64,000 nucleotides of DNA, from contig OZ176059.1 in the NCBI GenBank assembly GCA_964247055.1, positions 1,860,001 to 1,924,000 on the forward strand, in the 5' to 3' direction. The notes under the pieces were generated by a model, which worked only from the letters and a program-made list of their open reading frames with translations, was not told where the DNA came from and did no database searches. The position numbers and the translations under genes are program-made. This document shows, piece by piece, positions 8,613 through 25,774 of this stretch (within the stretch, counting starts at the first letter, position 1; the number at the start of each line of letters is the position of its first letter). This DNA comes from Paragordius varius. Its lineage: Eukaryota; Animalia; Nematomorpha.

Positions 8613-16538
<7,926 letters not shown>

Positions 16539-16995: not shown

Positions 16996-19673
16996 TATCA
17001 CACACACATATAAAACGAAAGTTTTCAAATAAATACTTAAAAATTTTCCACTTTATAAATTATTTAGGAAATTTATAATCAATTTTTTGGATAAACTTAC
17101 TTTAAATAATTTTTATTATTGAATATGATACTTATAAATATTCCATTTTAAATATAATTATATATTTATAATTATTTTTTTATTTTAACTAATGCAGCAC
17201 TCACCCATTAGACTATTTTTCATTTATTTAATAAAAATTGATTTTTCTGTTAATTTATTGCACATAATAATTTTTTTTACCACTAATAATATATTAACAT
17301 ATAATTCTTATATATATTTTTTGTTTATAAATCTAATATAAGAATAATATTAAATAAAAATTATATACATTGTTTAGCGATAAAATACAATTTGTTAAAA
17401 TTTTGCTTTTTTGCAGATATAAAACAGGAATATTCAAAAAAATATATGTTATGGTATCGAATTTTGATGGTTCTTTCGCGGTTTACAAGTTTAAAAGGAA
17501 TATATTTTGGTTATTGCTTGAATTTTTACAAAATTACTGCACATTATTAAAATTTATTCCTTTATAAAATTGATATTTATTAAATATATTAGGGAAAATG
17601 TTAATATTAAATTTTTAATATTATAAGACACCTAAATTCTCATATTTTTAGAATCTGTTATGGATTAATGTGTTTAAAATAACCTAAAAAGCCAAAAGCA
17701 CAAGTTTTATAATGTATTGTTAGCTTATACATTAAAATATTTTCAAAAAAAGCATATTTAAGGTAATTTTTAGCATGATTGGATAAGACGGTGTATAAAC
17801 ACCTTATAATATTACTTAAACACTATTTCTTTATAATTCGATGCCGTTGATAAATTCCATTATCTAGATTAAAAAATGTTGTGTTCGTATTTTAATTTAA
17901 ATTGATAAATTTTTAATGAGTTAAAACAATTGATATTCGATATTTAGCTGCAATGAATTTTTAATAGTCCTATTAAATACCGTTTTTTTAAACCTTATAA
18001 TACGCTCGCTAAAGTTTGTTTTTGAAACCATAGTGTATAAAAAATTATTTACGTTAAATTTTTTTAAATGATGAATATAAATTGAAAGCAAATATATATT
18101 TAGCATTCTGAGGTAATGAAATCTTTAATAGAATTAAATCATATTAAAGTATTTATATACATTTAACGGGTGCATAAATCTGCAATTTAACCTCATAAAG
18201 TAAATTCACAAACAGGGGCAATAAATATTTTATTTATTTATAGGTTTGTTAACTAATATGTTTTAAACGATTTTTGGACTAACAAAACTAATGGAACATA
18301 ATGAGTCCTAAATTTGCGCTTTTTGATTTTATGTGAATACGTTAAAAGGTAAAAAAACTTTTTTAAATGATTTCTAAACCCCTAATCCAAATACCCATAG
18401 GTATCCTAATGTATTCCTATCAAAATGTATACAACCTAGCATTTTTGTGACCACCTCAAGTTGGCCTTAGCTTTTTTTATCAATTGATTTTACGTTTAAG
18501 GATAACGCATTAGATTTTATTTTTAGTTATTAAGTAAGATATTGCCACAATCTGACTTTGAAAGCCTTAATAAAACATGTCTTTAGAATTTAGAGATTAT
18601 GATTAAAGGCAAGGTGATATAAAATAACCAAATGACATTGCCAACGGGAATATTCTTGATTTAATCACATTTTATTTTTTAATTAAGAATCATGGTCGCT
18701 GACTGATTATTTACTACTACTACTAGTTTTTATATATTGGTCGTATTTAGGGCTTTATCCAGGTGTAAATGCTGATAATAAAAATTAAACCACCATTACA
18801 CCAAGTTCATAAAACGATGGATATTGTCCGCAAAATAAACGTGAATACTGTACTTTAAAAAAAGTTTACTGTAGCGTTTTTTCCTATATTTATTCCGATT
18901 TGGTATAATTGAACTTATTATAAAATATATATTATTTTGTTAAAAAAATTTAGGATAACATTTATGTGGTTCATGCACTTTGATACAATACAGTAAATGC
19001 ACATGTTAAAACGTGTATCTTTTAAATTTGAACTTTGATTATATTAATATACCATTAAAACCGTTTCAAAAGATAAAGAAAAAACGCAAAAAATTATAAA
19101 TTGTACTACGCATATTTAATTTTTGTTAAAAAATGTTAGGACATTTATGGTGCTTTAAGTATAATACTTACAGCCATTATGGCAAAAGTAACGCACATGT
19201 TAAAAAACGTGGATGTTTTGACTTTAAATTTTAATCATATAATTGTTTTAGTACAAAACTTTAATATAAAAACATTCTTGAAACTACAAATATCAATCTC
19301 ATTTGTGAACTTGAATATGAGAAAAAACACATCTCACTTCTATTATAATTGAGTTAACTGAATTAACAATACATCAACGCTATCATAAATTTAACATACA
19401 AAATGATTTCTTTCTGTTATTTTATTTTGTTTGTTTATATCAAAGATAGTGCAAAGTTATAAATTTTTAATTCTGGAAAAAAAATTTTCCACAAAATTTA
19501 CAGAAAAATGCATGTTTTTTAAAAAAAAATTATGTGATTTTAAGGTTTAAATGGTAATATAAGCCAAATTTTTTTGATAAACATTAAAAACCATTATGCA
19601 ACTATTAAACCTTTAATCCATTCTTACAGCATTTTTATATAAGCCATAAACTTTTATAAAAAAGAAAAGTATA

Positions 19674-19965
19674 TACAGTAAAAACCGAAATTATACGGAA
19701 AAAACATAAACATAAAAATATAAAGACAAATATTTTTTTCTAAAAGACAACCATACTTTTTGAAAAAAATTTCAAAATATAAATTATTGTTTCAAACCAT
19801 AAAGTATGAGATAGGAATGTTTATTGGTAACACAATGAATTATACAATTTGCAGTTTTAAACAATCAGATATATAAAAATAATTCAAGATTTAAAAAGCA
19901 TTGAGAAAAAAATATTTATCTTTATATTTTTACCTTTTGTCCGTATAATTTTAATTTTTACTGTA
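19674..19965. mobile_element. MITE family B (TA-CAGTAAAAATTGAAATTATACGG termini, Tc1/mariner-like), about 300-bp palindrome
   Basis: Inverted arms of about 110 bp with TA|CAGT ends. Further copies lie at 24388-24467 (internally deleted), 25025-25317, 25352-25653, 26260-26548, ~26590-26915, 27731-28021, ~36225-36540, 38261-38577, ~41290-41575, 43174-43456, 47026-47328, 49818-50138, ~51270-51590, ~53870-54110 and 61059-61362, with partial copies at ~1870-2100, ~35875-35990 and ~59855-59920. Confidence 0.88.
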
Positions 19966-19989
19966 AACTATTACTAATCTAAATTAATA

Positions 19990-20452
19990 CATCAAATTTG
20001 CGGTCACATATCGTAGCTAACATGCCTCTTGTCTTGTGGCAATTGGTTCGAATGAGTATGATCATGAGAGGACAATCTTAATATATCTTTCATATGAACA
20101 TCTGTCGAGCGATTTCTACATGTATTTTACACTACCTCATCAGTTGGGATACAACAGTAAAGATAAAACTTGAATGTATTATTTGTATGTATTATTGGCA
20201 CATCTTGTTAAATCTCAATATACCTTTCTTCTTTGAGAGTTTTGGCTTAAAAAAATTCACTACATAAAATTCCTGAAAATCCGAATATTATAAACTTAAA
20301 ATATACGGAAACCGAACACAAAATAAATAATTATCGAAATCAGTCATAATATGCATCTCTAAGCAATCGTTTAATAAAAATTAAAAGAAGGTATAGTTCA
20401 GGGCCAGAAAAATCCTTTAAGGGCCCCGTGGGCTGCTGTTTGAGTATCACTG
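19990..20452 (-). mobile_element. Decayed hAT (Buster/SPIN-like) element remnant
   Basis: The minus strand begins CAGTGATACTCAAACAGCAGCCCACGGGGCCC, a hAT-type end. It contains a frame reading RNRSTDVHMKDILRLSS, reminiscent of the hAT transposase C-terminal RNRL..HL...LRL motif. It is truncated by the family B MITE. Confidence 0.4.
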
Positions 20453-21028
20453 ATATAGAGTTTTATATGTACATCCATATGTTTCTATTTTTGCGCTCAC
20501 CGTGTAAATAATAATATTTTTGATAAAACGGTTAATAAAAAAATTCAATTGAAATTTTCAGCAATATTTTAAAGTCTAAAAAGAAATAATTTTGGTTAGC
20601 ATAAAAAATCTGTTTTAAAGCTTCAATCCCTAAAAAAACTTATATAATTTGTTTTTATGATTATCATTTAGTGTGGCATTTTTAGCGGTGTTTAAGGCAT
20701 ATTAACCAGATGTAGAGATATCATACTTTGCCAGAATTCATACATCCTCTGTTATCTAATAACTACCGCCTTATCCAAATGTGACTTTTTTTAACTTTTT
20801 AAAGCTATAAAAATGTTGTTTTTATTATATTAGGTTATCTCAATTCAAATTTATTTTTTGGATTAATGTTGGTTGTTTTGCTAAAATAATTGCATCAATC
20901 TTTTGGCATAATATTAATATAATTTACAGATGTAAATTATCTTGTCGAAACATTATTTTTAATAAAACTGTTTCAAATTTAAAATTTTATTATTAATTGT
21001 AACAAAGTTTTTTCAAAGTTTAAAGAGC

Positions 21029-23467
21029 ATGAAATATACATTCTTTATATTAGCGATAGCTATCTGGACGGGATGTTTAATAGTTAACCCTATAGGTAAA
21101 AAATTTTATTTTATTGCGTAAAAATTTATTCGATATTATTTATATTGTTTTTTATACAATTTTGTTTATTATGTAGATTGTGGTTGTACCGAAGTAAGTT
21201 ATATACTTACAGTCATGTATCCTTTATTTTTTCAAAAATTTATTTTTTTTCGTTTAATGGAGGTATAAATATTTGGTAAAGAATGGAAAAAACAAGAGCT
21301 CTATGGTAATACTTACACTTTTTTAATATACCATAGAGCTCTTGTTTTTTTACATTCTTTACCAAATATTTATACCCACACATTTAACAAAAAAAATAAA
21401 TTTTTGGTTAAATAAAGGATACATGACTGAATATATATATTAAGTCTATATAATAAAAATTGAAAATGGATAAATACTTTTTAAAAGACAAAATCGTGTG
21501 TGTTAGCAATTTACATCTCTTCCCTATTGTGGGATTCAAAATGATGAGTTATGTTGAAAAAAATGAATGTTTAAAATGGTTGGCTATTAGTTTTAACATT
21601 TTGTCTGTATAATTTTAATGTTTTATAATGGTAAATAACGGATTGGTTATGTTTTGTAATAACAGTTGTTAAATCCGTAATAAAACGATAAAGGACAATT
21701 TAGAATTAAATGAAAGTTTAAATAGAAATTTCTTATCAAAATAGAGTGCTTCTTAGTTATTAAATTGATTTCTATGAAATCCCTAAGTAGCTATACTCTA
21801 AATCTAGGCTCACCCCTAGAGTTAATTTTCAGTTTATTTTCAAATTTTCAGTTTAATTTTCATAAATTCCATTAAATTAATTTAAATTTGTATAACCAAC
21901 TGCATTTATACCAAAAGTGCAAAGTTGAATATATATACGAAATCGATATGTGAAAACCCCAATAAGTCAAATAGTTGTGTCGTACTGATGAGTGCTAACA
22001 AGCACAAAACCAGTCTGCGATTACTATTGACGAAGGGTTTCACATAAGGTTTATAATTTCTATTTATACTTTCATTTAATTCTATTTAATTATCCTTTAT
22101 CGTTTTATTAAGGATTTGACAACTGTTATTAATGTTTTATGTCAGTTCAAATTCACCCTTGAACAATTAAAATTCACCCTAAAAATAAATTGTGTTTTCG
22201 AATTGTAACTCATTATTAATATAAAATATATCTTTAAGGAATAGTTTATTATTTTTTCAGTATTATTTTAATTTAAAACAAAATTTTTATTTTTTAAAAA
22301 TATATAAAAATATAGGTATTTTTCTCAAAAACAATTATTTATACAAGGATAAATTTGAATTGTAAATGGTATATACGCATATTCATATTGGCCGATGTGC
22401 AATACAGTAGCGTATGGGTGAAAAAAATAAATGGTTAAAACTAAACCATTTTTTTCTCATAATTTAGGGCGGTTTTCCTACACTCCTGTAATAAATACCA
22501 ATTAGTCAACAATAAATGTTCGTGTATATTAAAAGCTTTTTTTTCACAATAATATTAAATACAGACAATAATTATTGATACTTTTTAAACAATAACCTGC
22601 ATATAAACAATATAATATTGTTTTTTTATAAAAAAGCATCACCCACACGAACATCGAATAGTTCGCCTAAAACGAAATGTTTGCAGTTGCAGTTCGAATC
22701 CGAATAAATTGATCCCAGCTTCGGGATGCCAGTAATATGAATTTATTTATTAAAAATTTACACATATTTGTCTACAGTTTTTTTTATAATTCATCCAAAA
22801 ATGTGTGACTTGATTCAACTTTGTTTCATTGCTAGTTTTTATTAAAGTTTCCAAACAGGTCTTAGAAGGAGCTTATAATTGCTAAAATTAAGAAAATTAA
22901 AAAAATATTAGCTAATAATACTGGTGTTTAAATTAAACACCATCTGTCAATATTTGAAAAACTAGGATGCTTCCTAATTCACATTGTAATGTAACAATTT
23001 ATTCAATATTATCGTATTGAAGTATACTTTTTTATTTTGAATCCTTTATACCATGAATAAGAAATTTTTTAAATAAATTCAAAATGTGTAAAACCTTTTA
23101 AGCCATAATATATTACGATTGCGATTTCATTTAGTGAAATTATTGTGGCGACAAAACATAAAAAGTAAAAGGTTATTTTTATATAACTTGCACATATTTT
23201 TTAAAATTTAACAACCTCGAACGCTAAGGTTATTTCACACAAAAGAATTCTGGTTTATAATGGTGAAAAATATCAGTGTTGTTTACTTTTTTGAGTTTGC
23301 CTTTCATAATTTCAATTTTTACTGTGGATGTTTAAAAAATTTTATTTGTCAGAGGTTTCAATGACTGTCGTGCCGGAGGGGCTTATATAGCATGTCCCAG
23401 CAATTTGCTCTTCAATTTTGATAAACAATGGTGTGATTGGCCCGTTAATGTTAATTGCCCTTGTTAA
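21029..23467 (+). CDS. Secreted single-domain chitin-binding (CBM14/peritrophin-A) prepropeptide, 97 aa
   Basis: Exons 21029-21095, 21177-21193, 22637-22731, 23353-23467 (294 nt, phases 1/0/2 all match). Protein: MKYTFFILAIAIWTGCLIVNPIDCGCTEHHPHEHRIVRLKRNVCSCSSNPNKLIPASGCQGFNDCRAGGAYIACPSNLLFNFDKQWCDWPVNVNCPC*. It has a hydrophobic signal-like N-terminus and the CBM14 signature CP...FN.....CDWP.NV.C. Confidence 0.86.
21208..21431. mobile_element. MITE family C (TA-CAGTCATGTATCCTTTAT termini), about 225-bp palindrome
   Basis: Near-perfect inverted arms; a second copy lies at 55463-55688. Confidence 0.85.
21657..22131. mobile_element. Inverted-repeat-bounded element enclosing a hammerhead motif (Penelope-like/retrozyme remnant)
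   Basis: About 75-bp inverted arms at 21657-21730 and 22055-22131. Inner stems TATGTGAAAACCC/GGGTTTCACATA and GTCAAATAGT/ACTATTGAC enclose the hammerhead core. Confidence 0.5.
21980..22020 (+). ncRNA. Minimal type I hammerhead ribozyme motif with a G12>A core substitution
   Basis: TCGTA-CTGATGA-GTGCT(AACA)AGCAC-AAAAC-CA-GTC-TGCGA. Stem I is TCGTA/TGCGA, the core is CUGAUGA, stem II has 5 bp, and the short stem III ends in a GUC cleavage triplet. The required GAAA reads AAAA. Confidence 0.62.
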
Positions 23468-25774
23468 TTAACTCTACTACATGCGAGATATAAACCGAAA
23501 AAATATGTTTAAATGCTTGTTTTGATCGCAAAATTCATTTTTAATATTTAGTGATATATATATATATTTATAAAGTGTATGATTTATAAATTGTATAATA
23601 AATTAAATTATTATTCAAATTCAATATACATATTTGTAATATTTATATAATATTTATTAATAATGATTTACAGTATGAGTAAGTATACATTGCTGGAAAG
23701 TTATTAATTATTGTCAAATAGCATACATATACAACAAAGGGCAGTATTATTGGCTTACAGTTATTTTTATTTAATTTTTACTATTAGCCAATAATAATTC
23801 TTTTTTATGCATATGCTATTTGGCAATAATTAATAACTTTCTAGCTATATTAGATTACTCACACTGTATATTTATATTATATTTGGATTATAATAATAAT
23901 ATAAAACATGTGTATGTTAAACATCGTGAAGTTAATCAAAATTTTTATTTGGTACTTTTTTTGAATAAATTTTGTCCCATAACCTATAAAATTATTCTAA
24001 TATTTCTTTCTATACAAAATATTTTATTTTAATATAAAATACTTATTCCCAAATCGTTGAGTCTTTTAAATAAACCTTAAAAACCTAAACAAATACCTCG
24101 CTTAAAACACGAGGTCATACTTAATCCTTAAACGAAAATTCGTTTTATTGGTGCTTATTAGAGTTTTAACCATTATCTTTTGTATAAATAGTAAGTTGAT
24201 TTTTCTTACATAAAATATCAAAGCACTTTATGTATATATAGTAATAATCTTTGTAATTGCATTTGCAAAAATTAATTAGTATATAATCAAATCAAATTAA
24301 GGTTTTTTGAATATATATATATATATAGGTTGTCGGTTAGAATTGCACGGATATCAAAATAAATTTTTAAATCACAACAGTTGTCATACAGTAAAAATTG
24401 AAATTATACGGACAAAACGTATAAATAAAAAGACAAATTTGTACGTATAATTTCAGTTTTTATTGTATTATTCAAACAAATATATGGTTTAAATATTTAT
24501 TTTATCGTAATTATATAATAAATTAACTAACAAACAAAAATCCCATAAAAAATATTAGATGTAAAATAGGCAATACAAAACATATATAAAGATGTAAGTT
24601 GCACATATCCATTGCATTGTTATTAATATAAATTTATATAGGAAAATATATAAAAATACAAATCTTGGAACAAAAAAAATTAACAAAGGTTCTAATAGAT
24701 AATAAAACACATATTTATGATTTCATATGATATATATATAATACTTTATAAAATAATACAGTTTTAACCATGATTATTAAAGTAACATTGTAAATAAATG
24801 CAATAGTATAAAGGGTGTCAGTTTTATCCAATAAAACGCCACCTCTCTATTGATAAATGCGTAAATCCAAAAAAATGGATAGTAAAAATTAAATTAAAAA
24901 AAGCAAAATATAAAAAAGAGTTCATATATTTTTGGTTATATAATGAAAAGTATAATATTTGTTAAAGTATCGTTTTTGAATGCAGTATAATGAATCTAAA
25001 TGTTGATTATAGCCACGCACTATTTACAGTAAAAATTGAAATTATACGGACAAAACTTAAAAATATAAAGATAAATATTTTTTCTAAAAGACAACCATAC
25101 TTTTTTAAACTTCATTTTTAAAAATATAACTCATAGTTTTAAATTGTAAAATATAATTTGATATGTATATTGGTGACACAATCAATTATATATTTTATAA
25201 TTGTAATTATATAATTTATATTAGAAAAATTAAGGTTTTAATAAAAGTATGGTTGTCTTTTAGAAAAAATATTTGTACGCATATTTTTACTTCCGTATAA
25301 TTACAATTTTTACTGTAATATTCCACAATACTGTATTCATATAGGTTATGATACAGTATAAAACATTTTTTTATACAGACAAAAAGTAAAAATATAAAGA
25401 CAAATATTTTTTTAAAAAGAAAACCCTATTCTTTTAAACCTTAATATTTCCTCCATAAACTATTTAATTACATTATTAAATAATATAATTAAGTGTATTA
25501 ACTTACATATCTATTCGCTTTTTTGCAACGCAAAACATTAAGTAATCTTTATATAAATTGAATTTCTAAAAATATGGGGTTGTCTTGAAGAAAAAAATAT
25601 TTGTCTTTACATTTTTATGTTTTGTCAATAGTATATTTTCAATTTTTACTGTATAAAAGCAATTAGTAATATAAGGGCCTTCACACAAATTTGTATTTAA
25701 CAATATTTTTTGTGAAAAAAATGTGGTAATTAGGAAAAAAACCCAAAAAACAACATAAAAAATTATATATATCA

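Follow-up and report, generated by a model that had tools for sequence, protein, structure and literature searches.

A 64,000-nucleotide window of the horsehair worm Paragordius varius (positions 1,860,001 to 1,924,000 of the forward strand of contig OZ176059.1, GenBank assembly GCA_964247055.1) very probably contains a real four-exon gene for a small secreted chitin-binding protein, which lies at 21029-23467 of the window (Table 1). The complete reading at which we arrived, and which we hold to be probable on balance, is that of a real, intact and stand-alone gene whose product is made up of a signal peptide, a short pro-piece with RLKR at its end and one 56-residue peritrophin-A (CBM14) domain, with a proposed role as a coat and a proposed origin from a chitinase. 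All searches were made exon by exon, and the figures given below for selection and charge are counts summed over exons.

The gene had been proposed from the letters alone, as four short exons invisible to the open reading frame (ORF) track that splice into a 97-residue precursor with a 56-residue C-terminal peptide behind RLKR. Translation of the exons reproduced this model, including the lengths of both precursor and peptide, and the ORF list misses all of the exons, even at 45 residues. All introns are GT-AG, and the exons sum to 294 nucleotides (nt), equal to 97 codons and a stop. GC content is 0.41-0.46 in exons 2-4 versus 0.14-0.24 in the introns, with steps that fall exactly at the proposed junctions, both at the window locus and at the paralogue described below. 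The N terminus encoded by exon 1 looks signal-like by eye (MK, a hydrophobic run of 11-13 residues, and the small residues T-G-C). Exon 2, a mini-exon that reads D-C-G-C-T-E with the carried-over G, bridges exon 1 (phase 1) to exon 3 (phase 0) and is the part of the gene model that we hold with the lowest certainty. Behind RLKR, exon 3 continues with Asn-Val-Cys-Ser-Cys, 12 residues and a further Cys.

Table 1 Features of the four-exon gene, of its paralogue and of the upstream neighbour (window coordinates unless a locus is named; a slash marks a splice junction)
Feature	Position	Strand	Description
Exon 1	21029..21095	+	ATG, 22 codons + 1 nt (phase 1); donor AG/gtaaaa
Exon 2 (mini-exon)	21177..21193	+	17 nt; acceptor ttattatgtag/, donor /gtaagt
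Exon 3	22637..22731	+	His-rich pro-piece; RLKR at 22664-22675; predicted start of mature peptide from 22676; last 2 nt are part of a Gln codon
Exon 4	23353..23467	+	Completes the Gln codon; C-terminal two thirds of the CBM14 domain, W-C-D-W, terminal C-P-C, stop
Candidate AATAAA polyadenylation signal	23597..23602	+	130 nt past the stop; weak, in a region of ~80% A+T
Paralogue on contig C7, exon 1 equivalent	L011 7552-7615		ATG, hydrophobic start, phase 1 end at AG/gtattt
AP-complex mu-subunit gene (Pfam Adap_comp_sub)	9813-16535	+	Exons at ~9813, 11763, 13434, 14191 and 16410-16535

Strong evidence for this structure comes from the worm's own genome. A paralogue search, suggested as a check when the gene was first proposed, was made with the peptides of exons 3 and 4 and recovered one copy, on contig C7, which is 60% identical in exon 3 (residues 8-32) and 70% identical in exon 4. 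Its layout matches that of the window gene in its four exons, their phases, the position of the mini-exon, the V-R-x-K-R site, the eight Cys and a stop right behind the last of them. The mini-exon of the C7 copy is 11 nt long and lies 68 nt past exon 1, compared with 81 nt in the window; the third exon is in phase 0 and carries V-R-N-K-R followed by Ser-Pro-Cys-Ser-Cys, and the last exon terminates in Cys-Arg-Cys-stop. Between exons 1 and 3, a span of 1.0-1.5 kb, only three candidate mini-exons per locus would restore the frame, and at both loci one of these sits directly past exon 1 and has the best donor. A mini-exon that arose as a chance match is unlikely, the joint chance in both loci being ~0.01 (a rough estimate from candidate density). 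Across 60 aligned codons of the two copies, the proportion of synonymous differences (pS) was 0.78, which is saturated, against 0.25 for nonsynonymous differences (pN), and both copies have therefore long been kept as coding sequence under purifying selection. When the DNA of the two loci was compared, only common repeats resembling miniature inverted-repeat transposable elements (MITEs) were shared and no exon-level DNA similarity was seen, which rules out a recent duplication.

The peptide had been assigned to CBM14 from its cysteines, and a Pfam scan agreed. Exon 4 alone (37 residues) scored 25.5 bits against CBM_14 (PF01607; cut-off 22.1) over profile positions 20-53 of 53, and exon 4 of the C7 paralogue was likewise over the cut-off, at 30.3 bits. 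Because the match starts at profile position 20, the first third of the domain, with its first two Cys, must be on an upstream exon, and exon 3 fits with the right spacing; exon 3 alone is too short for a Pfam match, and these two Cys are placed by their spacing and by the paralogue. Read from the exon translations, the six CBM14 Cys are spaced 12-5-8-12-7 and are accompanied by an outer Cys at each end (CSC and CPC), as proposed. Among solved structures, the best match of exon 4 was Avr4 of Pseudocercospora fuligena (PfAvr4, 4z4a; E 1.6e-5), followed by chitinase chitin-binding domains, a squid beak chitin-binding protein and Cladosporium Avr4. The W-C-D-W of exon 4 falls within the stretch aligned to PfAvr4, in which Trp94 and Asp96 (Trp100 and Asp102 of CfAvr4) are essential for (GlcNAc)6 binding (PMC6128652). 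With W-C-D-W conserved and its Trp and Asp essential in Avr4, we infer on good grounds that the peptide would bind chitin.

Both the window peptide and Avr4 (PDB 4z4a, 6bn0) appear as small secreted single-CBM14 proteins with eight Cys and the W-C-D-W ligand-binding motif, but several differences set them apart. The canonical pairs of Avr4 are first-third, second-sixth and fourth-fifth, and its extra Cys50-Cys56 bond forms a local loop (PMC6128652). That bond lies within the N-terminal loop of Avr4, whereas the extra Cys of the window peptide stand at both termini. Avr4 also has an extended binding site, as well as an extra N-terminal helix and a long loop for which the window peptide, with only 2 residues before its first Cys, has no counterpart, and it belongs to another kingdom, with the similarity confined to the generic CBM14 core. 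Membership of the Avr4 family was rejected, as the Avr4 disulfide pattern and N-terminal helix and loop are missing from the peptide. Arthropod single-domain peritrophin-A proteins, such as CPAP1-type cuticle proteins and the mite allergen Der p 23, share with the window gene a signal peptide and one CBM14 domain in ~80-100 residues; they are not known to carry more than six Cys or a pro-piece of convertase type. The nearest clusters in the ESM Atlas were generic arthropod CBM14 proteins of 77-94 residues (scores 0.76-0.82), which are leads only and carry no claim of orthology.

A six-frame CBM_14 scan of the whole assembly (110.6 Mb) yielded 29 exon-level matches, of which the window holds one only, exon 4. 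The corresponding scan for GH18 (PF00704) gave 51 matches across the assembly, zero of them on contig C10, the contig of the window gene, and the one closest to the paralogue on C7 was 3.2 Mb off. The upstream same-strand neighbour in the window is an AP-complex mu-subunit gene, the last domain exon of which ends near 16535, 4.5 kb before the ATG. Upstream chitinase exons, named beforehand as the finding that would speak against a stand-alone gene, were looked for and not found on contig C10. With no GH18 on this contig and an AP mu subunit as the upstream gene, the possibility that the exons are the tail of a chitinase was rejected.

The same scan placed the window gene among relatives. Fourteen of the 29 CBM14 matches begin at profile positions 15-18, in domains that, like that of the window gene, have an intron separating the second Cys from the third. 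In eight of these 14, five of them on C9, two on C1 and one on C4, same-strand GH18 exons directly precede the domain or, in one case, stand next to it, and in the six fully readable chitinase loci the first-half exon begins with a Thr/Pro/Gly-rich linker, which gives the classic order of catalytic domain, linker and chitin-binding domain. An extra Cys past the last canonical one (C-x2-C), with a stop within 0-4 codons, is present in seven of the eight GH18-linked domains, and in six of those seven an extra Cys ahead of the first canonical one (C-x7-C) was also found. The eight-Cys form is thus not unique to the window gene; it is, with other spacing, the usual form of the C-terminal domains of the worm's own chitinases. 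Beyond the C7 copy, the nearest kin are mostly these C-terminal chitin-binding domains (30-49% identity over exon 4).

The chitinases on C9, C4 and C1 share with the window gene the CBM14 signature, the intron between the second and third Cys and an extra Cys at each end. They differ in that their domain stands behind GH18 and a linker, has no R-x-K-R and carries C-x7-C and C-x2-C, whereas the window gene presents a free domain behind a signal and a pro-piece, with C-x-C at both ends. The most likely origin of the window gene and its C7 paralogue would be descent from the terminal exon pair of a chitinase gene, although a tree of 37 residues would not carry such an origin. On this proposal, the last two exons of a chitinase gene, encoding the C-terminal chitin-binding domain, would have been copied and would have gained a signal-peptide exon and a mini-exon, after which the spacing of the outer Cys would have tightened to C-x-C on both sides.

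Where the flanks could be read, CBM14 domains of the worm's own genome had both extra Cys in ten cases, neither in four and the N-terminal one alone in a single case. This pattern, in which the extra Cys are present together or absent together, fits a fourth disulfide, which probably joins the outer Cys and staples both termini of the peptide. Such a bond was part of the original prediction; the paired presence and absence sits well with it, and its topology is something that we infer. A profile built from both exon-4 peptides matched 709 proteins, and in the best 150 of these a Cys three or fewer residues past the last canonical Cys occurred in only 6 of 1167 CBM14 matches; the terminal extra Cys is therefore unusual outside the worm's own genome.

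The R-X-K-R site, first recognized as being of furin or convertase type, reads RLKR in the window gene and RNKR at the same place in its only paralogue. The alignment of the two copies shows V-R-x-K-R and the three exon-3 Cys to be invariant. Within the pro-piece, V-R-x-K-R is the sole conserved part, which speaks for constraint on the basic site as such. The genome also has convertase P-domain (PF01483) exons at two loci (C4:9885459 and C3:7708481-7708875), and the pro-piece is probably removed by a convertase of the furin/kexin type. In the window copy, the pro-piece begins with H-H-P-H-E-H (22637-22654; four His in six residues), a run that is not found in the paralogue. Together with the additional Cys of the same region, weighed below, these His residues could mark a metal- or pH-sensitive pro-piece or be mere drift.

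Several other chitin-binding loci were recorded in passing. Four tandem GH18 chitinase genes, each ending in an eight-Cys chitin-binding domain, occupy C9:2514750-2595037 (L012-L015); the first two have identical last exons, which reflect either a recent duplication or two haplotypes side by side. More chitinases of the eight-Cys form are at C9:3.04 Mb, C4:9.51 Mb and C1:12.60 Mb. At C2:3392496-3392967 (L023, minus strand), a CBM14 gene with two tandem domains has the eight-Cys form in both (C-x7-C and C-x2-C) and no GH18 near it. On C4, a pair of identical CBM14-type last exons at C4:4898994-4899089 and C4:4916819-4916914 (L018 and L019) is separated by 18 kb, has an unusual tail past the domain (further Cys and an acidic end) and represents a duplicated gene or an assembly duplicate. 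At C3:7708481-7711085, two CBM14-like exons (7710246-7710374 and 7710960-7711085) share the strand of the P-domain exons and lie 1.4-2.2 kb downstream of them, so that the locus, the second part of which is covered by L026, is either a convertase with chitin-binding-type end domains or two adjoining genes.

For the protein itself we propose the following course. The precursor would enter the endoplasmic reticulum, where the domain would fold with the three canonical CBM14 disulfides and a fourth, formed by the outer Cys, would staple its termini. A furin/kexin-type convertase would cut off the pro-piece in the late secretory pathway, and the free domain would then bind chitin via its conserved aromatic and acidic W-C-D-W patch. 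A single binding module can coat chitin but cannot cross-link it, and a coat or protective role is therefore the most likely one, placing the peptide in the worm's own chitin-containing matrix, such as the larval or juvenile cuticle or the eggshell; this is still a guess. We accordingly rank a coat on the worm's own matrix first, an Avr4-like effector or shield at the host interface second and an antimicrobial peptide third.

The second of these roles strikes us as rather unlikely. As a host-directed or shielding effector, the peptide would bind the chitin of the arthropod host (peritrophic matrix, tracheae or cuticle) or, in the manner of Avr4, cover the chitin of the worm as protection from host chitinases. 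Exon 4 has its best solved relative in PfAvr4, with which the essential Trp and Asp align (PMC6128652), and a signal, a pro-piece and a Cys-rich peptide form a layout typical of secreted effectors and toxins. However, the similarity to Avr4 is that of the generic CBM14 core, the fourth disulfide of Avr4 (Cys50-Cys56) closes a local loop and is no terminal staple, and the helix and long loop of Avr4 lack a counterpart here. A bolder version, which we regard as unlikely, is that an arthropod parasite has freed the end of a chitinase as a convertase-released, termini-stapled mini-lectin that acts at the host interface, either hiding the chitin of the worm from the chitinases and immune lectins of its host or binding the peritrophic matrix or cuticle of the host. 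If true, this would be an animal counterpart, independently reached, of the fungal Avr4 strategy.

Equally unlikely, in our judgement, is that there is no working gene at all, the locus being a decaying copy of a chitinase end, or two CBM14 exons of another transcript next to chance look-alikes of exons 1 and 2. Several observations weigh against our complete reading, and some of them favour this alternative directly. Contigs from three of five small runs under the same species label, which were presumed to be RNA, did not fall on the gene (18800-24700) except for 19-nt chance touches, one apiece at two sites; such an outcome does not prove the gene silent, and the splice junctions gained no transcript support from these contigs. 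Hydrophobic frames that start with ATG are fairly common in such A+T-rich DNA, the mini-exon and the signal exon are backed by one paralogue, and repeats surround the locus, intron 2 itself containing MITE-like palindromes. In the window copy, two or three further Cys occur in the pro-piece (the D-C-G-C of the mini-exon gives two), which is odd and which the paralogue does not share. The co-occurrence behind the fourth disulfide is strong, but shared descent inflates it. Finally, no orthologue from another species was found by profile or word search, both of which are blind to small precursors: the best 150 proteins of the profile search were without exception CBM14 proteins of several domains, which outrank any small orthologue by their summed scores, and a word search that used the open frame of 43 residues surrounding exon 4 gave no match under a length window that leaves out precursors of 90-100 residues, so that novelty does not follow from either. 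On the other side, both copies keep their frames, splice sites, eight Cys and basic site despite saturated silent sites, a frame-restoring mini-exon stands at the same place in each, and contig C10 has zero GH18 exons.

A role as a chitin-binding peptide with antimicrobial or antifungal action, after the type of tachycitin or the mytichitins, is quite unlikely; it was one of the functions put forward in the original prediction. Tachycitin and the mytichitins are chitin-binding antimicrobial peptides (PMC11767717). Tachycitin of the horseshoe crab (1dqc) and the mytichitins of the mussel are chitin-binding peptides of invertebrates that share with the window peptide its small size, stand-alone form and core motif, and the window peptide too would be freed from a precursor; moreover, the worm's own chitinase-type domains match tachycitin at E 1e-4, and the C7 paralogue is cationic (~+4, plus three His). 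Tachycitin, however, has ten Cys, and the mature window peptide has 3 basic and 3 acidic residues, for a net charge of 0 and no amphipathic or cationic signature, which leaves the antimicrobial reading weak for the window copy. Mytichitin-CB is the chitin-binding end of a chitinase-like precursor and would parallel the origin proposed here, with the contrast that release from the chitinase would have taken place at the gene level and not by cutting of the chitinase protein.

Intron 2 contains two MITE-like palindromic elements, at 21200-21439 and 21657-22131, with arms of 51 nt and ~75 nt and 88-97% complementarity. Contigs of a low-depth DNA run (X3), which includes identical pieces, lie thousands deep on these palindromes, which are therefore high-copy repeats. 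Matches to microRNA families at 21271-21369 reflect the MITE-like hairpin only and are far under their gathering scores, and a hammerhead HH9-like match at 21974-22025 (+), within the second element, reached only 21.7 bits (E 0.047), its gathering score being 52.

Moulting animals commonly have single-domain CBM14 proteins, and the present finding extends this known theme. The variant described here is a stand-alone CBM14 peptide, probably released by a convertase and closed by a probable staple that joins its termini, which would have come from the domain of a chitinase. Horsehair worms belong to the least studied of the animal phyla, and ORF-based annotation misses small multi-exon genes of this kind. 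If expressed, the gene would illustrate clearly how a domain can break free of an enzyme gene, the exon pair of a chitinase having become a stand-alone prepropeptide. Its product would be a compact chitin binder of 56 residues, probably with four disulfides, and might serve as a stable chitin probe. It would also be a candidate molecule at the interface between a parasite that makes both chitin and chitinases and a host that is built of chitin.

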